A stretch of 64,000 nucleotides of DNA from Eutreptiella sp. 'Long Island Sound 2002' (GCA_964036045.1 OZ038378.1:3224001-3288000), one strand, 5' to 3'. Counted from the stretch's first letter, positions 12,766-35,261 are shown. The notes: generated from the letters alone by a model not told the origin. Translations and numbers: made by a program.

Positions 12766-13504
12766 GGGGGGAGCGTTAGCGCGCCAGGTGCGCGCCGGGC
12801 ATTTTTTTTGACCCGTGCCCCACTGGTGACCTTTTAGGGGGTGCACTGAGCGCAGTGCGTGCACAGTGCAACTATTTGGACGTTTAGCCGCCCTAGAACG
12901 CCATACTTTGTGATACCATGGGCATTATTGTTGTCATACAATGGGTATTTTGATGCTTCTTTCACATTCGGGATATGATATATTTGGATTCTCACCCAGT
13001 TTCACCAATTTTCTTCCATTTTTTGCTCGTTTCCACCACATCCACTCCTTACTAGGTTGATTTCTCCCCACCATGGGGGCCCCAAGAAAGCAGGGGTAAT
13101 GTAGCCATATTGATTTCTCCCCACCATGGGGACCCCGAGAAGGCAGGGGTGATGTAGCGAATACTGAGTTTGCGCTTTGTTCTTGTAACGTGAGGCAGAA
13201 ACGCCGTCCAAACCGCTTGCGGCCTGGGGACTCATTACCATAGCGAAATCAATGGGAAAGGCAAAGACAAAGTACCGTTTGTTAAGTACAATACAAATGA
13301 CATTTGGAGTTGTTGATTTCACAGCTATTGTCTAATTATGCAACGTGCTTTGTAGGGAAGGTGCGCAGTCCATCATGGTCTACTTGGGGGGGCTTCTCCA
13401 CCAGAGGGTAAATCTCGGACTGAAGTCGGGATAGTTAATAGAAAGGTAGCACACCGGGCGCGCGCCGAGTGCGTGCCGGGCGCGCGCCGGGCAAACATTC
13501 CCCC
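12766..13504 (+). mobile_element. Harbinger-like non-autonomous element, family B, with a nested family-A left end at 12837
   Basis: Ends GGGGGGAGCGTT / AAACATTCCCCC with subterminal GCGCGCCGGGC units. 13280-13504 is clearly homologous to 47015-47224. The TSD is not preserved. The nested GGGGGTGCACTGA-GCGCAGTGCGT-GCACAGTGC-AACTATTTGG follows TTA. Confidence 0.75.
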
Positions 13505-13872
13505 TTAGAGCACGCTGTGTAAACCAAACAGCCTTCAAGAGCCCACCATGATGACACACTAATCTGACAAACACAGATCAAGTGTCTGTTAGATGGTCAG
13601 CTTGTATTTTGTGTTAGCAAGTGCAAGTTTTGTTGTTTTATGGTTGATACTGGTGGTAAGGCTGTTATCGTGAGCGGCAGACGGAGGAGCAGAGGAATGC
13701 GGCGCATGCAGATGGCATCGGCTTAAAAGAGGGGTGGGACATTGTGTGGCAATGAAAGTGAGGGAACGGTTGCTAGTGGGGCAGCGCTGTTTTATTGGAC
13801 GCCGTTTGGCAACAGAACTGCTGCTCTTGTGCTTTTGCGCCCTTTTTGGCTGTCCGTTTTTGTTTCAACAAG

Positions 13873-14238
13873 ATGTTTTCTGCCTTCACTCAGCTTCTCA
13901 AGGCCTGAGTTCTCCCCATTGGCTCTGGGCTGGCTGGCATCCTGCTGATGCGCATCCTTCAACGTTGCGCCAGATCCCTCCCAGGCCCAGGGCCACCACC
14001 AGTTGCCCCTGTCTCCCCGTGGGCCTGTGTGACCCACCTGACAAAACCCACAGTCCCCCAATACGTGCTCGACATGACCAAGCAAATGGGAAACGCAGTG
14101 TATCGGTTTGTCTTGCCCTTTGGCATGTCTTTTTATGTGGTGACGGATCCTGCGACCCTCTCGCAAATCTTCAACGACGATGCCGCGGCGAAGACCGATG
14201 ACTACCATGGCATTGCGCAAGGCACTGGCGGCCCGAAC
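13873..14238 (+). pseudogene. Cytochrome P450, 5' part (membrane anchor, Pro-rich hinge), interrupted
   Basis: ATG 13873 lies directly after a pyrimidine tract and AG. The frame reads MFSAFTQLLKA*VLPIGSGLAGILLMRIL...PGPGPPPVAP...GTGGPN, with an in-frame TGA at 13906-13908 and a second ATG at 13948. It continues in frame at 18963 once the insertion is removed. Confidence 0.85.
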
Positions 14239-14375
14239 TGCAGTTAGTATAGCGCAGCGGGATAACGAAAGTTCTGCCACCGGGCCCCCAGCACTCCCCC
14301 CCCGCCCTGTCCTGCTTCCCCTCCTCCCTCCTCCCCTCCTTAGCCTTTTTATAATTTAAAGGCGGGGGTACATCG
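14235..14375 (+). repeat. Split direct repeat A1
   Basis: Matches 18672-18810 with 2 substitutions plus a small difference in the C-run. Confidence 0.95.
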
Positions 14376-14384
14376 GGTCATCCA

Positions 14385-14750
14385 ATGGGCTCGGCCAAAA
14401 ATGATGGGGCTTGGGACTGGAGACGTCTAAAAGACGAGGACCCCGCGGCGAAGTCAACAGCATGGGCCCACCTGATTCAGACGCCCTGGATGGCCCGTAT
14501 GATCCCGCTTCAGCATCGTACAGAGGTGCTGGTGGCGGGCGTGGCAGGATGGTCTCGGGACGGAGTCAGCTGGAGTGCGGTGAAGCTGGCCAGGACCTTC
14601 CATGAGACGCCAGGGATCTCGTTTCAATCCCCTGATCCGCAGCGGTACGTCGACGCGCTGCTGTATGGGTTGACACTTGCCTGGGGAGTAGAGGTGACTG
14701 CGTTCAGCCTGTCTGCGGAAGAGGCGTCGGGTTCGCTGTCTGCGACTTAA
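14385..14750 (+). CDS. First ORF of the YR element (ORF1a, unknown; possibly the N-terminus of gag)
   Basis: ATG 10 bp after A1; 121 aa. It overlaps the frame of ORF1b, which is open from about 14635. Confidence 0.5.
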   Translation: MGSAKNDGAWDWRRLKDEDPAAKSTAWAHLIQTPWMARMIPLQHRTEVLVAGVAGWSRDGVSWSAVKLARTFHETPGISFQSPDPQRYVDALLYGLTLAWGVEVTAFSLSAEEASGSLSAT

Positions 14751-14791
14751 TCGCCAAGCCGCCTGGAAAATCGGCGAGCAGGAGAGGAGGA

Positions 14792-15571
14792 GTGGGGATC
14801 AAGGGTGAGAGACACTCTCAGGGGAAGAACGCAAAGCCCGAGACCAACAGTGGTATGGCTCTGGACGAGGAGGCGGGCGCCGGAGCCGGTGAGCGCGAAG
14901 GAGGTGGGGGGCCGGCCGCGGCTGAGGAGGACGAGGAGGACGAACTGATGTACAAGGAGCCCAGCTTCAAAAATGCCAGGTGGATGAGAAAGAGGCCCGG
15001 GGCCCCGCGGTGGACGGTCAAACTGTGCCGCCTGGTTGAGAGGTTAATGGAGGCCGAGGAGTCTGAGACTGCGACAGAGGTGTCCACGATCATTGACGAT
15101 GTCTGGCAATTGCTCCTTGATTGCGACAAGTCGGGTAAGGACGCGGTCAAGGCAAAAATAAAGGAGGTCAAAAAGAGGAACAAGAAGAAGGCCAAAAAAC
15201 AGAGGCGAAAGGAGAAAAAGAAGGAGATGAAGGAGCGCCGATCATCTCGGAGGGGAAAAGGGAGGCGCAGGTCCTCCGACTCGGATTCGTCGTCCACGGA
15301 CAGTAGCAGCGACAGTGCGTCCGATACATCATCCTCGGCAAGCTCCAGCTCATCGGGGCGCCACTCAAAGCGCAAAAGCAGAGGTGGCACGCAGGGGAGC
15401 ACGAGTCAGCCGGAGTTCAAGTGGATAGACGGAAAGCGCCACTTCCGCAGCAAGAAAACAGGAGACTGGGTTAATTGCGAAAACCCTCCAAAAACGGCAT
15501 GCCCGGAGTGTGGTGGCCACCATTGGTGGTTTGACAGGGAGAAGCACGGGTGTAAAGGCCGAAGGAAGTGA
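14792..15571 (+). CDS. Gag-like ORF of the YR element
   Basis: Lys/Arg-rich and Ser-rich tracts, a C-terminal CPECGGHHW knuckle-like motif, and position ahead of the YR. Confidence 0.7.
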   Translation: MGIKGERHSQGKNAKPETNSGMALDEEAGAGAGEREGGGGPAAAEEDEEDELMYKEPSFKNARWMRKRPGAPRWTVKLCRLVERLMEAEESETATEVSTIIDDVWQLLLDCDKSGKDAVKAKIKEVKKRNKKKAKKQRRKEKKKEMKERRSSRRGKGRRRSSDSDSSSTDSSSDSASDTSSSASSSSSGRHSKRKSRGGTQGSTSQPEFKWIDGKRHFRSKKTGDWVNCENPPKTACPECGGHHWWFDREKHGCKGRRK

Positions 15572-15679
15572 CTGCGGAGCCATGAAGATGGAGACGGGGC
15601 TGCAGGAGGCACGCGGGGGGACGAGGAGTGCGAGCGCGAGTGGCCGTGGGCGACCGCGCGCGACAGACTCGAGGCGGCG

Positions 15680-16809
15680 ATGGCTGACGAGTACGGGACG
15701 GCTTTTGATGCCACGACAGTGCGGGGCCTGCAGGATGGTACCCTCGACGGGTATCTGCGGCAGCTCAGGCGACTGGCCAGGCTGGAGCGGATGCGACCAG
15801 GCGACGGTGCTCGGGGTATACTGGAGGCCAGGCTCATGCAGATTGTGCAGGGCGACCTGTCAGAGAGCGCCGCAAAAATCGTTCTGGCTGTGGCGAGGCT
15901 GGCCGAAAAAAACGGAGTGGCTTGCCCCGGTGGTGCGGAAGTCTGATTGGTACCTGGTTATGTCTATCGAACAGCGGCGGTGCAAAGAGCAGCGGGCGGA
16001 GGCGAAAGAGTGGGCGCAACTGGAGGACCTGTGCAGGCTGTGTGCGGCTGCCTCCAGCTTTGCGGAATGGGAGGCGGTGGCGCTGGCGTGCGTGTCGGTG
16101 GGACACTGCCTAAGGGGTTCCGAGGCGGGGGGTGGGGTGGGGCAGGAAGATGAAGGCGTGCGGTTTTTTGGAACAAAGTCCAGGAGGGGGGTCCAGCGAC
16201 AGGAAGTGGGGCCCTGGGTGCGAGAATGGTTACAGTTCTTGGCGAAACTCAGGGCACTCAAGGGGTTCCACCCCGACAGGGGGGCGTGGCACGAGTCCAG
16301 GGAAGCGCTGGGGAAGACGTTGGTCAGCCTGCTGGAGAGGGGGGAGGGGAAGAAAACTGTCCGGTGGCACAGTTTCCGTAGGATGGGGGCAGCACAACTT
16401 CGGACAATGGGGGCGCCGCTCACAACAATCATGCTCTGGGGGGGGGTGGAAGTCAGCGAAAGTCGCGCAGATGTATACCGAGGCCCCCCCCAGGTGGAAG
16501 TTTGCCCGGTCGGGAAAAATCCCATGGCCCATGTGGGGGGGGGGGGGGGGGGGGGCACAGCCAGGCTACTGCACAAAGCAGGGCTCCACACTCTCTTTCT
16601 GGCCGTCATGGATACGCCGGGAAATCGCCTTCGCGGCCGGGGAAGCTTCCCGACTTGCTGGGGGATCGCCTGAGGGGGGTGAGAATGCACGCAAACGAGG
16701 AAGGAGAGTGTCCCCGAGTGCGAGTGCTGCGAGGACAGTTGCGAGATGCGGCGAGGGCGATAAGCGAAATGCGGGGCGTCAAGGTGCACAGGCAAGAGAT
16801 GGTGCGTAA
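15680..16809 (+). CDS. Tyrosine recombinase, with two +1 homopolymer frameshifts
   Basis: N-terminal LQDGTLDGYLRQLRRL; catalytic R in CLRGSEA (16113); K in FGTKS; HSFR (16368); WGGWKS; Y in AQMYT (16474). Frame changes occur at A7 (15906-15912) and G9 (16438-16446). Confidence 0.9.
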
Positions 16810-18556
16810 CCTCATTACGGGGATGGGTGAGGCAGTGCTCAGACTTGAGTGTGGAGAGGAGGGTCTGGATACGCTGTGCAGTGTGTTGACAAAAGTTGGG
16901 GAGGGGGACTTAGACGAGGAGGACGATGGGTACTACAGTAGTAGTGACGAGGAGGGGATGGTTACCGAGGAAATGGCTGCTCGGGGGGTGGGGGAAGCGG
17001 GGTGTGTGACAGTGTCGGATAAGATCTGGAACAGCCTGGTCCCTCGTGACTCTATGGGGGTGTACCGGAGGTAGTTGAGGGAGGACAGTGCGGGGGTTGA
17101 AAAGTCACAGGGGGGGAGACCGGGGCCTGTGGATGCAATGCTGGAATCCCTCAGAACTGAGACTAAGGGACTGCGCAGAACAAAGCGACCCGAGACGGCC
17201 AAAATGTTCCTTACCTGGAAGAATGCACTAAAATGCCGAGCCATTCTTGATGCGCGGGGAGTCAACGCAAGCGACCCCCGGAAGCCCCCAAAGTTCAGAC
17301 TCCCTGGGCTGGAGGCCATCCGCCACTGGATGGGACGTGCGCGCCCTCGGCGTGTGGGGGGAGGCAGGTGCCGTGTTTTTTTGGCTAAACTGGACCTGCA
17401 GAATGCTTACTGGAGCATCCGCCTCCCCACCGCATGGCGCACTGTTTTTGTGGTGGGGGGGCGGTCGGGTAAGCGTTTTCGATATGCAAGGCTGCCTTTC
17501 GGATGGGCCTATAGCCCTGTGATATTTCAGAAGCTGGTATCCTCTGTTATCCGGGGGGCCTTGTCGCGACGTGGTGTGCGGGGTTGGGTGTATCTGGACG
17601 ACATTTTACTGTCGTGCAGGAGCAAGAGTCGGCTGAGGGGGGCTGTGAGGGACTGCATTCGAAGGCTGAGACGTGCGGGTTTTATTGTGGGGGCCAAGTC
17701 CGAGCCGGAACCAACTGAGCGCCTCGGTTTTATTGGTAAGCAAATTGACACCAAAGCTGGGACGATCAGCAATGCGGTGGGTGCCTTGGTCGGTGCTTTC
17801 AGGGCGTGGGTCAGGGGGGTGGGCAGGGGGCGCCTGCCCTCAAAGGTTATGGAACGCCTCCTGGGTAAACTGTGCTGGCTGAGCAGGCGCAGTGCGGGTC
17901 TGGGCGCCTTCCTGGCGGGCGCATATCGAGGTTTGCAGAGTGGGAAAGGGGTGTTTGGGAGGGGTGTCTGCAAAGGGGTGGCGACAGTGCTCCTGTTTTC
18001 TTGTGTCCCTCAGCGGTGTGACCCTCCAGGGCCTGGTGGATGAGGGGCCTGGGAGGTGTTCGTGGATGCGGCTCCAGAGGGCAAAGTTTTTCGACTGGGA
18101 ATTGTTGGGGGGGGGGATTACTGTCGATCGGAGGTGTGTCCGCCCTGGGTGGACTCCCTGCAGCAGGCGGAGCTGTATGCGCTGTACATCGTTATTAAGG
18201 TGGCATCCTATCGTGGTTTTGAAAGAATTCGTGTGGGTTCAGACAGCAACGTAGCTAGGTCTCAGATTAATGCGCCGCGGGCGTCGGTGCATGCCGATTC
18301 TCAGCAACGAATACTCTGGCGCCTGTTTTGGCTCAGGTGCTGGAGTACTGTTAGTGTCGAGTCCTTCAGGGTGCCGTCTTTTTTAAACGCGGCCGACCCC
18401 CTGAGCAGGGAGACAGGCTTCTAGTCACGGAAACAGGCCATTGCCGAAGCAGCAAGGCGTCGTGAGATGTGGGAAAGAGCCGTCGACACGAAGTACATGG
18501 GTCTGATGGAGATGATTCGCCCCCCGTGGAGATTCAAGGGGGAGGTGGGGGACTGA
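16685..18556 (+). CDS. Reverse transcriptase plus DIRS-type RNase H; single frame with three in-frame stops
   Basis: RT motifs LDLQNAYW, LPFGWAYSP, YLDD (17591). RNase H motifs FVDAA, AELYA, SDS, NAADPLSR. Stops TAG 17072, TGA 18041 and TAG 18422 all lie in one frame. Confidence 0.9.
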
Positions 18557-18606
18557 TGACGCGACGGTTACGGGGGACAAATGGACGCGCAGTCGCGCGG
18601 CAAAAT

Positions 18607-18962
18607 GTGCTGTCCGCCGAATAGTGCATCTTTCCCGATTGCTTTGTCCAGGGAGAGGGGTGGGGCAGGCAGAACTGCAGTTAGTATAGCGCAGCGGGGT
18701 AACGAAAGTTCTGCCACCGGGCCCCCAGCACTCCCCCCCCCCTGTCCTGCTTCCTCTCCTCCCTCCTCCCCTCCTTAGCCTTTTTATAATTTAAAGGCGG
18801 GGGTACATCGACCCACCCGCCCGCCCCGTGTCTTGTCCCGGAGCCTGCCAGGGGTGAAGAAAGGACGGCCCTTCATATGTTACTCTATCACTGGTGCTGT
18901 CCGTGGAATAGTGCATCTGTCCTGATTGCTTTGTCCAGGGGGAGGGGTGGGGCAGGCAGAAC
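18607..18962 (+). repeat. 3' repeat block B1-A2-spacer-B2 of the YR element
   Basis: B1 and B2 are both 69 bp with 5 differences. B1 and A2 overlap at GAAC (18672-18675). An 83-bp unique spacer lies at 18811-18893. Confidence 0.95.
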
Positions 18963-20096
18963 ATACTCACCCGCGCCACGTCGGATCCCCGTTGGTTCGG
19001 GGCGCGCAAGGGCCTCGCACCCGCGTTCGCGACCCTCAACATCAACCGCCAGGTCGCCCACATGCACCACAAGCTGGGCGTGCTTTGTGCGAAGCTCGAG
19101 GACCACGCACGCGCCCAAGCCCCTGTGGATGTCACGCAGATGATGGTCATGTTCACGTTGGATTTCATTGGCCAGAGCGCATTCAATTACGACTTGCGTG
19201 CCTTGGAAGACACCCACAGAAGCGAGGGAGCGAGGCTATTTGCCGATGTGCAAACCGTTTTCACGGAGTTCGTGTTGAAGCAGGGCGCCAATCCAATCCG
19301 GCCGTGGCTTTTCTGGCTTCCCGAGATCAGGGCCGCAAAACAGGCATCGAAACGGCTGCAAGCCTTGGCCCTTCAAGTCATGAGCCGCTACCGTGCGACC
19401 CACTCTGAAGAGGACATCCGGACCGGGCAGTCCATCTTGGCCCATATATTACGGAACCCTGTCTACCCTAGTGATGAAGCCCGGGTGCACGACGTCCTCA
19501 CTTTGATCGTCGCGGGGTACGACACCACTGGCTTCACGGTGTCATGGATTTTGTACGACCTTAGTCGCACCCCAAAGGTCATGCAGCAGCTGCAATCCGA
19601 GTTGGATGCTGCGTTCCCAGACCCTTCCGTCGATCCCTCTCCCTCCGAATTATCCCAGCGGCGTGTCCTCAACAACTGCATCAAGGAGAGCATGCGGCTG
19701 TGGCCGGTCGCCGCTCTTGGAGTGGGGCGGGTCAACAGCAAGGACGTGCATGCCCAAGGGTTTATTATCCCCAAAGGGTCCCAGATAATGACACCGTTCT
19801 ACGCCATCCACCGCATGCCGTGCATTCCGGACGCCGACGCATACCGCCCCGAGCGCTGGGACGAGCCGGACTCGGCCCTCACGGCCCGGTACATGCCCTT
19901 CTCACAAGGGCGGCGTAACTGCGTGGGGCAGAACCTGGCGAACCTTGAGATCCGGGTGGTGCTGGCGCGGCTCATGCGGCGTTTTGCTTTTGAGGTCGTC
20001 CAGGAACCGGCAATCGACTTCCGTGGGGTCACTATGAAGCTGCGGGACTTGTTGCTGCGGGTCAGTAACCGACTTGGGGGTCAGACCAAAGGGTAG
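18963..20096 (+). pseudogene. Cytochrome P450, 3' part (377 aa, no stops)
   Basis: ILTRATSDPRWFGARKGLAPAF (C-helix WxxxR), AGYDTT (I-helix), ESMR (ExxR), PERW, FSQGRRNCVG (heme Cys). Confidence 0.95.
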
Positions 20097-21066
20097 AGAG
20101 TAGAGGGCTGTGTCTCAGCGAATGCGTGTCAGAGGTGAAGCGGCGTCCTTTGCTCTAGTGCTCCTCGTGCCGTCACTCCGCCCCGTGCCAGTTGTTGGGT
20201 CAGCGTTTTACCGGTTTCTTCAACATCGGGGCTTGTCTGGGGCAAACCCACTCCAAAACACAACAAGAACATTCCAATGGTAGACTATGGCTGCTCTTTT
20301 TGAGGGTGAGATGGCTGCTATGCTTGTGATACATGGTCCGTGACGGGTTTTGTTTGATACAGCCATTCTTGACCCATTTTTCGCCTTTTGGGTCTTTTTG
20401 AACCGCTGTTTCTAGGGGCCCAAATGGATCAGAAGCAGGGAAGGTCCTTGAGCATATTGAGAAAGTCATTTCAGACCCATCTTTCATCCTCGGAGATTTC
20501 TACCGCGTGTCCCAGTAATCCTGCCCTGCTACATGTGCAGTGCATCGTTCGGGTGTGAAAGGCGGCAGTAATAGGGGCTCGACGGGCCCCAAATGCTTCC
20601 CATTCTTTATTGTTGGTCACCCAAAGTGGATGAAGGCACCACATGGGGTCCGCATGGGGGCCCGATACCTGGAACCTGAACAATGGCCCGTTTCCGGTCA
20701 TTGCCAACCAGCACAAACCGCCACTTGGAAACCCACAACGTCTTCCTCGGCACTCCAAAATCGGGCCGTAGTGGTGCACAAGTGCATCAAATCAGTTGGT
20801 TGCCTCCTTGCTTGCTTCTCCGCCACAACTCCCCCCACAGTTATAAGGCATGGGGTCAAACCAACCTTGGTGCCTTGAATTGAGCTTCGGTGCGTTTAAC
20901 CGCAAACTGTGACCGGAAATGTGGGCTAGAAAAAATGAAAAAGAGAGGCGTGCGAAATGACACATAGCAGGTGGCCATGCATCCCCATTTTGTATTGGTT
21001 TTTCAGTGAGTGGTCTTGAACATACCCATGGTCTTCGCCATCCGGCGTGGAATGCACTGCTGCAGG

Positions 21067-24839: not shown

Positions 24840-25039
24840 NNNNNNNNNNNNNNNNNNNNNNNNNNNNNNNNNNNNNNNNNNNNNNNNNNNNNNNNNNNNN
24901 NNNNNNNNNNNNNNNNNNNNNNNNNNNNNNNNNNNNNNNNNNNNNNNNNNNNNNNNNNNNNNNNNNNNNNNNNNNNNNNNNNNNNNNNNNNNNNNNNNNN
25001 NNNNNNNNNNNNNNNNNNNNNNNNNNNNNNNNNNNNNNN
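24840..25039. other. Assembly gap, 200 N
   Basis: Run of N. Confidence 1.
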
Positions 25040-28691: not shown

Positions 28692-31600
28692 TGTCAGCAT
28701 CAAGCATCCCTCTGAGCAGCACGCTCAGAGTATTGTCCCAAAATATCAATGGGTTTCAAACAAAAATAACCATGAGAAAGCGTAAGCAGAAGCGCATAGT
28801 GGCCCTAGGGTCACTGCTGCGGTCCCTGGAGGTGGACTTCTTCGCCATCCAAGAACCTCACTTCGTCACGGTGGAGGATCGTCAAGCGGGCATGCAGTGC
28901 TTGTCAAAGTACGGGTATGGCCTGGACAGACCACTTCATGAAGAAGGAAGGGGAGGAGTGGCACTGGCGTGGAAAACATCCAAGTGGACACTGCAATCAA
29001 TGAAGTTCTTGTCTCCCAGGGCGTTGAAAGCCTCGCTGTCGAGTGGTCCGCTGGAGATCACCATAGTTGTGGTCCACTTCCACCACAAGCACACGCGTCG
29101 ACAGTCACAATGGAAAGACATCGCCAAGGAGTTACATGGACCAAACCTGATTTTATGTGCTGATCACAATAGTTTAGTTGTAAAACACAGGGACGCCTTT
29201 GCGCCCCCAGAGTTTGAGCATGACACGTCTTTACGTGCCAGAGACCAGGAGGTAACGACCTTGGCGAAAGCGGGTCTGCAGGATGTTTGGGTGGATATTC
29301 ACTGTCCAGCCCTGACGGACATCAAGGACAAGGAAGCATCGTGTCCGACGGGCTTCACATACGGCTACCCCCGAGAAGGAGAGCGACTCGACCCGCAGAG
29401 GCTACGCCATATTGACCGCATCCACACAACATCCGAATTGCTGAGCCTGGCGACGAGCGTATACCCCATGTTTGCTGCCAACTCAGACCACAAGGCGATC
29501 CTGGCTGAATTCACACCCCCGTCTTTCGACACAGAGGACACGGTCCCCAGATTCTACTGCCCAGAGACCATCCTTCACGACCCGGAGGCAATGGAAGATC
29601 TGGAGACATCTCTCAAGTCTGTCAAGTCAACAGGGGATCAATGGTGGGAAGAGGCGCCGAGCTGCATCCAAAAGAAGGCGATCAACCATCAAAGGGAGCA
29701 TAAAAACAAAAAGCAGTCGGTAGAGCTACAAGCCTTGCGGTTCCTGCGTGGCTCCACGAGAGACTCTGTCGCACTAGCGGTCTACCAATTTCTATTATCA
29801 CTCGGGATCGCAGCAGCAGATGCAGCAACAACCTACACCCTCCTGGTGGGTGTGTATGAAAAGGCTCAGCGTGACACAACGGGCATGGAAACACTGTCCA
29901 AGCTCAAGGGGGTGATCACGACCGGGGAAACCTCAGGAGATCCGAGAGCGCAAAGAAACGAATTGTATCGGTTAATGCGGGAGTTGCAGGAGCGAAAGAA
30001 ACTTCAACAGCTGGTATCCAGGACAGGCTCGGCGATACGGGGGGCAAAGGCGGTGGCAAAAGAGCTGGTGGACCATTGGGACAAAGTGTCCACCCCGACG
30101 GGATCCACCGAAGAAGATTGTGTAGCTTATCTGAAGTCGTTAGGAGTGGAACAGCGGCTGCGCAAGGCAGGTCGACTTCTTTTCAAGCAACTATCCCTGG
30201 ACATAGTTCATGAAGGCCTTAAGAGGCTGAACAGCAAAAGTTCCCCTGGATTGGATGGTTTCTCGGCAAAATTCTTCAAGAGGTTCTCGGACATCTTCGA
30301 ACCGCAAATGTATGACTCAATTAAACGTTTCCTCGAAGTGGGCAAAATGCCGGAGACATGGACCTCGGGAGTGGTGACAATGATCCCCAAGACGAAGGCG
30401 ATGCAAACACCAGATTCGCTCCGACCAATTGCACTGCAAACTACAAGGCAGAAGTGGCTCACCAACCCCCTCCTGATCCAGTTAGAGGATGTACTCCTCC
30501 ACTGTATCCCGTCACAGCAAACAGGTTTCCTTCGACACAGAAGCATACTCCAGCATGTCTATGGGTCACGGGCACTCTGGGATGGCCTAAGTGAAGGAGC
30601 GGCGTTATCAGTAGACTTCAGAAATGCTTTCCCCACGATGTCTCACGAGATGGTGTCGGCAGCTCTGGGTCTAATGTGCATACCATTCTTGTATATCCGT
30701 CTGATTCTACACCTCTTGCGAGCTCCGTATCTATACTCCGTTGGAAAAGGATACGTCCCAGGTGTATACCACCACCCGAGGGCAGGCACACGCCAGGGGG
30801 ATCCACTCTCCCCGGCGCTGTTCTCCCTGGTGGCATCCTTCGTGATTTTCCCACTACAAGACCTGGGTCCAGTACTGACTGTCATGATGTATGCAGACGA
30901 CCTCATCAATTTCTTTGATGGAAGAGCCAACCCACAGCTGTTGAAAAGAGTATGGGAAGTGGTTTCACGTTTTGGACAATTTTCGGGGTTGAAGGTCAAC
31001 CTGAACAAAACAGCAGCGATAGTTCGCAACTGTGGGGGAATGGAGTGGGCGAGGTGCTTTCGGGACATTGGAGTGGATGTCAAAAACTTCGTCAAGTATC
31101 TGGGTGTACGCTTGGGGAATATTGGGCACCAACAAGACGACCAAGGATGGGGGTTGACGATAGAGCAGGCCTTTGCACCAGCACTGCAAGAGGCCTTCCG
31201 TCGCGCAAGGGTTGTATCCACGCTGCAACTGTCCATGAACGAACGTGCATTCATGCTGACATCATGGATTCTGCCGGTCGTGGCATGGGTATCCAAGGCA
31301 TATTACGCCCCAATCTCGGTGATCAGACAACTGAAGTTGGTGTATCACGCGACTATGGGTACCAATAGCTGGGGAATCACCCTACCAATCCTCTCACGAC
31401 CAAGAACGCAAGGGGGACTGGCGCTACCAGAACCAGAACTGTTTCTTATGCACCAGGCAGCGGCTCCGTTCGTCAGCCTGTTGGGAGAGCCTCACAAATT
31501 CCCTGACAAGGCAGTGGAGACCTTCTATGCATGGGCAACAGCCATAGGGTTCACACCGTCCAAGGACAACCTTCCATATATTCAACTGGGCATGGTCCGA

Positions 31601-34575: not shown

Positions 34576-35261
34576 GGGCTCGAGAGAGAGGGAGAGAGAA
34601 ACAGAGAGAGAGAGAGAGAGGGTAGAGCACAGTGGGAAAGGAACAGAGAGGTGCAACAGGAGAGAAAGAGCAGGGGAGAGCAAGAGAGAATGGGAGGGAG
34701 AGAGTAGGAGAGAGACCCACAGAGCGAGAGACCGGGGCTAACCGGCGCAAAGGGAGGTGGTGGGTTCGAGCTGACCAGGGTTCGAGCTGACCCGGGTGGG
34801 TTCGAGCTGACCAAGGTAAAAGGGACGCCACGGCGGCACGGAACAGTCAAGAAATGAAAAAGCAGGGCGCCGTACCGCCCCTGAGCCACAGGCTCGACAC
34901 GTTGTGACGTGTTGAACAGCCGAAGCAAGACTGGGGCGGCGAGAGTGCGGCCCATGTGAGGATGACGGAAGCAAGTAGGCATGAATGTGTGGGCGGCATG
35001 CACATGCATGGTGGGGAGCCGAAATGGTATGCGCCACACGCAAAACAGCAATGAATTGTTGAGTTGCCTGACAGACGGAGCACATGCTGAAATGCTGAGA
35101 CGCCTTTGCGCCAACCAGGGCGCCATTGCGCCCCTGAGGATTGAGTATGACACGTCCTCACGGGCCAGAGAGCAAGTGCATGATAGGGTCACAACCTGCA
35201 GGGCAAGGGTTAGAGACTAACCGGCACTGTGGGTGGGTGGTGGGTGCGAGCTGACCTCAAT

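Follow-up and report, generated by a model that had tools for sequence, protein, structure and literature searches.

How can a retrotransposon of 4724 nucleotides (nt) enter a coding sequence without adding or removing a single base of it, and could it leave the same way? The question is raised by a 64,000-nt stretch of DNA (the window; GCA_964036045.1 OZ038378.1:3224001-3288000) from the euglenid alga Eutreptiella sp. 'Long Island Sound 2002', in which a cytochrome P450 gene at 13873-20096 is split by an element at 14239-18962 that lies in the same orientation as the gene (plus strand, as for all features below). From its repeats, its Pfam matches and comparison with other copies, the element is a complete but dead tyrosine-recombinase (YR) retrotransposon of the DIRS order. 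An earlier note, made from the sequence alone, had read the locus as the footprint of recombination over a short shared core and had suggested that precise excision could switch the gene back on. We conclude with high confidence that a DIRS-order retrotransposon integrated conservatively into the P450 coding sequence, and that the insertion is old, fixed and gene-killing. What remains of the P450 gene is a pseudogene and not a switch waiting to be thrown.

Exact interruption of a P450 gene

Upon joining positions 13873-14238 to 18963-20096, we obtained a reading frame of 499 codons plus a stop, with a single in-frame TGA (13906-13908). The 5' part (13873-14238; 122 codons) translates into a membrane anchor, a proline hinge and the first conserved block, aligns with the N-terminal parts of homologues, and ends in the codons GGC CCG AAC (G-P-N). 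The 3' part (18963-20096; 377 codons plus stop) matches Pfam p450 (PF00067) at E=9.8e-66 and keeps all catalytic motifs, with AGYDTTG (19512), ESMRLWP (19686), PERW (19848) and the haem loop FSQGRRNCVG (19899-19928) representing the class features of P450 proteins, namely the I-helix (A/G)GxxTT, ExxR, a PERF-like motif and the haem-binding FxxGxRxCxG loop. Homologues at 30-44% identity occur in euglenid, MMETSP and haptophyte data, the closest named relative being a Euglena gracilis transcript (42% identity). The interrupted gene is intronless, and its 3' part is a single copy, matching only itself, in the 2.28-Gb host assembly of chromosome-sized contigs.

The removal of the element is exact at the level of codons. 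When the joined protein was aligned with nine full-length homologues (MAFFT), GGPN/ILT at the join (slash) matched GPNMFT, RPSLFT and the like column for column and free of gaps. While a frame match at the join would arise by chance alone in 1 of 3 cases, this gap-free alignment carries the restoration beyond that chance. The left junction reads CTGGCGGCCCGAAC followed by TGCAGTTAG (in longer form, GGCGGCCCGAAC followed by TGCAGTTAGTAT), and the right junction reads GGCAGGCAGAAC followed by ATACTCACC. The element itself is laid out as split direct repeats, A1...B1/A2...B2, and its internal B1/A2 junction reads GGCAGGCAGAAC followed by TGCAGTTAG (longer right half TGCAGTTAGTAT). An AAC triplet thus stands at both ends: the left one (14236-14238), an Asn codon, is derived from the target, as judged by the join alignment and the position counts of 60 insertions, and the right one (18960-18962), the last triplet of B2, is derived from the element.

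Reads support the junctions independently of the assembly. We used four short-read runs in the form of contigs, of which X1 and X2 come from the same sample (S1), X3 from a second sample, and X4 is labelled as a second organism. One X1 contig, found again in X2, spans the left junction (13850-14292) and another, likewise found again in X2, spans the right junction (18935-19800), both with 0 differences, while an X4 contig spans the right junction as well (18937-19121). In X3 the left flank including the TGA was confirmed (13850-14149, 0 differences), with neither junction crossed by any of its listed contigs. Because the X1/X2 contigs cross both junctions and the X4 contig crosses the right one, the P450 insertion is not an assembly artefact.

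The TGA at 13906-13908, which falls in the predicted N-terminal anchor, was read with 0 differences in the X1/X2 and X3 contigs, hence in two samples, and the ATG at 13948 is in frame with the joined P450. The junctions, the exact removal, the 499-codon product with its motifs and the TGA followed by an in-frame ATG, all of which the earlier note had described, were therefore borne out. The TGA is a second lesion of the P450, independent of the insertion. At ~1% divergence, about one stop is expected per 1.5 kb of unconstrained P450 by our own estimate, and the single TGA fits that expectation.

A graded target triplet without target-site duplication

Across the family, we compared 60 left flanks from independent insertions, together with 42 right ends. 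Position -1 of the left flank was C in 60/60 (chance 6e-35), position -2 was A in 51/60, and position -3 was A in 42 and G in 15 (A or G in 57/60). At position -4, A was found in 31 and G in 13 of the 60, so that the element's own G is not enriched there, and A was in slight excess further upstream. To the right of the element, position +1 was A in 23/44 (p=8e-6). The shared core is a graded triplet, R-A-C, in which C alone is obligatory, and the target motif of the family is 5'-(A-rich)-R-A-C/(A), with the slash at the insertion point. The earlier note had proposed a GAAC core and had suggested checking other insertions for it; a common core was indeed found across the 60 flanks, free of target-site duplication (TSD), and this core is R-A-C, not GAAC. 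As position -4 prefers A and shows no enrichment of G, the G that precedes AAC at the P450 site stands there by chance.

The origin of the two triplets could be read from copies in which they differ. On the right, 41/42 copies end in AAC, whereas on the left a triplet other than AAC precedes the element in 23/61 (Fisher p=1e-5). Among the informative copies, 16/17 combine a left variant (GAC, GTC, CTC, AGC, ATC and others) with AAC on the right, and 1/17 shows the reverse (p=3e-4). Since AAC persists on the right where the left triplet deviates from it, the right triplet is element sequence and the left one target sequence. The start of A1 and the end of B2 are invariant in every copy examined, such that both junctions are base-exact, and neither TSD-like identity nor flank/element similarity beyond the triplet rose above chance across the copies. 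Some 60 copies hence support the proposal that a YR retroelement entered the P450 gene, leaving no TSD, over a short sequence common to its B/A junction and the target.

In a further search for empty sites, we blasted the joined flanks of 23 copies. Only one copy, L023, turned out to be inserted in a repeat family that also occurs in the window (~34667-34994 and 29168-29242). There the alignment spans the join as GAAC-AG, and with 70-84% identity and nearby indels the family is too diverged for a base-exact comparison and only suggestive. This family, the target of L023, is dispersed; it has a GA-rich head and carries a conserved GGTGGTGGGTTCGAGCTGAC block, and its copies in the window lie at 34667-34994, 35199-35255 and 29168-29242. 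Three 5' ends of the element (L041, L042 and L043, on contig G000:C9 near 65.11, 65.12 and 65.45 Mb), one of them in opposite orientation, have an identical 24-nt left flank; they resemble a segmental duplication that includes the element copy and were therefore counted once.

The element, its copies and the state of the window copy

A repeat search placed A1, the 5' terminal copy of A, at 14239-14375, B1 at 18607-18675, A2 at 18676-18810 and B2 at 18894-18962. A1 and A2 are 97% identical (2 mismatches and 2 gap columns), B1 and B2 are 93% identical, and the B1/A2 boundary (18675/18676) is an internal image of the element's end-to-end junction. A search for inverted repeats found 0 pairs in 13500-20500, and an Rfam scan of the window gave no match.

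ORF1, the first open reading frame (14355-15571), is gag-like with a C-terminal Cys/His cluster and gave low-complexity hits only in Pfam; it spans ~406 codons in uninterrupted copies and is frameshifted here by a 4-nt deletion at 14725. ORF2 (15575-18557; ~991 codons) encodes YR, reverse transcriptase (RT) and RNase H, runs in one frame in several other copies, and is broken here. Its first third is a tyrosine recombinase, with the catalytic core at 16104-16482 identified by conserved columns, profile hits and an AlphaFold2 model. The core holds the box I Arg in HCLRGSEA (16104-16127), the beta-hairpin Lys in FFGTKS (16164-16181), the WHSFRR motif (16365-16382) and the Tyr codon (16474-16476), the last two now being mutually out of frame in the window copy. 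Matches to Pfam Phage_integrase were weak (0.006-0.04). An exhaustive HMMER search found 225 relatives, and an alignment of 24 of them showed conservation of the box I Arg (R181), the hairpin Lys (K202), H-x-x-R (H266), the Trp/Gly position and the Tyr (Y302). The resulting profile matched Cre (2e-4) and XerD (2e-3) with H-x-x-R...W...Y aligned, and the model, at a predicted local distance difference test score (pLDDT) of 88.5, matched Cre (5e-6), the integron integrase IntI (8e-6), lambda Int and Xer proteins over both domains in Foldseek.

A homopolymer of 21 G (16535-16555) separates the YR and RT parts and, by copy comparison, shifts the frame in the window copy. Among copies L002-L028 the run differs in length (the window copy has 7 G more than L004), and on this length depends whether ORF2 is read as one frame or as two; because reads are flagged as interrupted at 16526-16564, sequencing error may account for part of the variation. 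Downstream follow the RT core (RVT_1, 17381-17689; Pfam E=7.6e-18, and 2e-16 in an uninterrupted copy) and RNase H (RVT_3, 18155-18361; E=2e-4, with a bit score just over the gathering cut-off), both of which are also present in an uninterrupted sister copy. With RT and RNase H, a YR in place of a DDE integrase or endonuclease, and no TSD, the element belongs to the DIRS order. Its Atlas neighbours include Euglenozoa clusters, which we take as a lead only.

The family is abundant. A-type 5' ends gave 341 matches in the genome, which holds about 170 or more copies of the element, 28 of them near full length at 93-98% identity (scored out of 570 candidates). Uninterrupted sister copies combine an ORF1 of ~406 codons with a single ORF2 of ~991 codons, and the recombinase frame is open in several. 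Compared to an uninterrupted copy, the window copy carries four frameshifts (-4 nt at 14725, +1 at 15906, -2 at 16438 and +7 G at 16535) and three nonsense codons (17072, 18041 and 18422). In a tree of 24 copies its terminal branch (0.0116) is the fourth longest, most being 0.002-0.009. Near-identity of A1 with A2 and of B1 with B2 is required by the replication model (PMC6681497), and in most copies each pair agrees within 0-2 differences; the window copy has 2 (A) and 5 (B). All five differences between B1 and B2 lie in B1, which also sets it apart from the B repeats of other copies, while B2 is family-typical, so that an inherited variant or a conversion patch is likelier than even decay. 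The 69-nt majority of the B repeat served only to polarise these five differences. Because all of them lie in B1 and may have been inherited, we dropped the B1/B2 divergence as a clock and used the terminal branch instead.

Remnant and rearranged forms of the element were looked for as well. No solo A-x-B remnants or footprint forms were found among 16 singleton 5' ends, and no permuted copies (flank, A-x-B-A-internal-B, flank) among ~60 loci. One copy, L028 (G000:C26:3576292-3583939), was considered as a case of a duplicated A-x-B unit and rejected: its longer 3' part is a poly(A)-tailed insertion of ~270 nt between A2 and B2, ending in A18 and flanked by its own ~15-nt direct repeat (GGACAGCCCTTCATT). 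A poly(A) retroposon that did produce a true TSD has thus landed in a copy of an element that produces none. In a related family, with a YR 50% identical and represented by L090, the B repeats end in ...AAAAC, and the 5' end of L090 is truncated; another candidate for a related family, L091, was too rearranged to read. Nested insertions are common in the related families of the ENA assembly, with one copy 5'-truncated within the RNase H of another and a further one split by a hAT-type transposase gene (L090:8440-8560, L091:8363-9163). An assembly gap of 200 N occupies 24840-25039 of the window.

Integration, excision and known systems

The reading that we favor is the published DIRS mechanism, in which a 3-bp sequence at the circle junction recombines with an identical genomic sequence and leaves no TSD (PMC3266345; PMC7192593). 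The junctions given in these sources (PMC3266345; PMC7192593 citing Poulter and Goodwin 2005) include AAC junctions for SkoDIRS2 and TnDIRS1a. Applied to the P450 gene, the end-to-end junction of the element (GGCAGAAC followed by TGCAG...) would have recombined with the target ...AAC/A..., with the target triplet staying on the left, the element's own triplet arriving on the right, and no target base being gained or lost. The encoded recombinase would probably perform the joining, with closed or end-joined complementary DNA (cDNA) as the likely substrate. The integration is thus a known process, to which the locus adds a clean case from a new group of hosts, backed by better-than-usual statistics.

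Several points weigh against this reading. No recombination was observed directly, and neither a circle nor an empty allele was seen. With AAC exact in just 37/60 targets (62%), homology cannot be the sole determinant of target choice. For DIRS-1, most of the cDNA was found to be linear and single-stranded (PMC7192593), which makes the form of the substrate less certain. Only the P450 gene offers a base-exact empty site, the second one (L023) being merely suggestive. Lastly, the placement of the element as VIPER-like is provisional, as it was made from gene order, repeats and host group by comparison with the description in PMC6681497.

Two other routes of entry were considered. Seen by itself, the P450 site with AAC at both ends resembles a staggered-cut insertion with a 3-bp TSD, and the C on both sides in every copy would fit a TSD of 1 bp. 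The 3-bp version is already contradicted by the 16/17 informative copies in which the left triplet is not AAC and the right one is; moreover, the right AAC also occurs at the internal B1/A2 junction, marking it as element sequence, and the element encodes no integrase or endonuclease domain (no Pfam hit for rve or an endonuclease in the uninterrupted copy). We consider such a staggered-cut origin highly improbable. A host-driven joining of linear cDNA, with 1-3 nt annealing at the ends and the recombinase playing another role or none in the target joining, draws on three observations: the homology is very short and graded, the internal B/A junction is used by no permuted copy, and the linear DIRS-1 cDNA mentioned above would suit it. 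It nevertheless appears improbable to us: end-joining usually nibbles or fills, whereas both junctions are base-exact in all examined copies and the P450 target lost nothing; the conservation runs -1 > -2 > -3, opposite to what priming by a 3' terminal overhang would give; and several copies keep the recombinase frame open.

A third alternative concerns the way out. The earlier note envisaged a reversible switch, in which the recombinase excises the element between the two AAC-bearing junctions and turns the P450 back on. Simple tyrosine recombinases such as Cre work in both directions, both junctions are directly oriented, the frame is exact after removal, and several sister copies retain an open recombinase frame. 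The genomic evidence speaks against it. The empty allele, GGCCCGAAC running directly into ATACTC, is absent from the assembly, in which the 3' part of the P450 is single copy, and no joint skipping 14239-18962 was present in the contigs of the four runs, although contigs drop rare variants and cannot exclude rare events. Filled junctions occur in sample S1 (both sides, X1/X2) and in the run labelled as a second organism (right side, X4). A separate lesion of the P450, the read-confirmed TGA, would stay in place even after precise excision. The copy is heavily broken, with one of the longest terminal branches; the 16 singleton 5' ends include no solo or footprint forms; and each junction of an integrated copy holds just half of the B/A site. 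Excision is hence unsupported, though not disproved, and the proposed switch, which was not borne out, strikes us as exceedingly improbable. The four runs gave no RNA evidence. A circle closure (B2/A1) has the same sequence as the internal B1/A2 junction, such that polymerase chain reaction across the junction and short reads are blind to circles. At another copy, L008 (G000:C374, a small contig), the left flank had no allelic empty partner and contained just a dispersed repeat of ~140 nt (L008:950-1105), for which the genome holds >1,200 candidate copies at 82-88% identity.

Within the favored recombination by the element's own enzyme, two observations constrain the joining step. A Cre-like exchange with a double-stranded circle leaves unexplained both the junction asymmetry (16 vs 1) and the unused internal B/A site. 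Were the triplet part of a staggered overlap, both mismatch products would be expected equally (1:1), so that 16 vs 1 is unlike a symmetric heteroduplex. A self-closed element would furthermore carry two B/A junctions, identical over about 200 nt, and use of the internal one was seen in no copy. The comparison of B/A to an attP-like site in the earlier note is to this extent too simple: the junction and the target do share a triplet, but no copy shows use of the identical internal B1/A2. One conceivable answer, which we offer as a rather unlikely possibility argued by analogy, is that integration exchanges one strand only: the minus (bottom) strand would be cut immediately 5' of GTT where the cDNA ends close, and replication would resolve the junction, which is how integrons (attC x attI) and CTX phage integrate. 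Such an exchange would fit the retention of the target triplet on the left and the element triplet on the right in 16/17 informative copies, as well as the conservation -1 > -2 > -3, which is the pairing order for a swapped 5'-GTT strand. It would also fit the non-use of B1/A2 if the active site were marked by structure and not by sequence; arm sequences outside A and B could explain that non-use equally well. If true, a one-strand exchange would tie the linear single-stranded cDNA of the DIRS-1 type to the integration step.

Overall, the P450 gene provides a base-exact before-and-after pair for a tyrosine-recombinase retrotransposon, and the young and abundant family (>170 copies, many with identical repeat pairs) provides a quantitative target motif of a kind that is scarce for split-repeat elements of the VIPER, PAT and Ngaro types. 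To our knowledge, the integration step of split-repeat YR elements has never been reconstituted, and the junction asymmetry together with the unused internal B/A site places concrete constraints on it. The locus reveals neither a gene switch nor a new principle, as the model of a trinucleotide without TSD was published twenty years ago.

Among known systems, the VIPER/TATE elements of kinetoplastids come close, with their order of gag-like protein, YR and RT/RNase H, their A1...B1A2B2 repeats and their lack of a methyltransferase domain (PMC6681497). They share with the euglenid element the ORF order, the split direct repeats, a length of ~4.5-5 kb, the absence of a methyltransferase domain and a host within the Euglenozoa, and some Bodo copies even have fused ORFs (Lorenzi 2006; Ribeiro 2019, PMC6681497). 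They differ in that the euglenid element holds YR, RT and RNase H in one 991-codon frame, that most VIPER copies are degenerate whereas the 2.3-Gb euglenid genome carries >170 young copies, and that no SIRE-like partner was seen for the euglenid element. PAT-like elements (PAT, kangaroo, TOC) and Ngaro-like elements also have A1...B1A2B2 split direct repeats, and their replication makes A1=A2 and B1=B2 at insertion (PMC6681497, PMC8547959). In the euglenid element the YR motifs (16104-16482) lie upstream of the RT core (17381-17689), unlike in Ngaro. Ngaro reportedly has RT and RNase H before YR, and the RT of PAT-like elements is said to group with that of DIRS1.

DIRS1-like elements (Cappello 1985; Poulter and Goodwin 2005; Piednoel 2011, PMC3266345) likewise lack a TSD and have a junction trinucleotide that matches the target and flanks both ends, with AAC/GTT among the listed triplets. 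In contrast to their inverted terminal repeats, internal complementary region, methyltransferase domain and YR downstream of RT, the euglenid element has direct and split repeats, no methyltransferase domain and YR upstream of RT, and hence falls outside the strict DIRS1-like definition. Cryptons and Starships share the short flanking direct repeats that represent microhomology between element and target instead of a true TSD (PMC13465315), but they move as DNA by excision and lack an RT, whereas excision is unsupported for the euglenid element. A last likeness, to the integron attC x attI reaction and the CTX-phage/XerCD system, is one of possible working and not of membership. The asymmetry seen here would fit the exchange of one strand, and in the structural comparison IntI (2a3v) ranks among the top matches of the element's YR, on par with Cre. 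Integron core sites carry the conserved triplet AAC/GTT. The euglenid element is a eukaryotic retroelement, and a folded attC-like hairpin or a replication-dependent resolution in it would be hypothetical.

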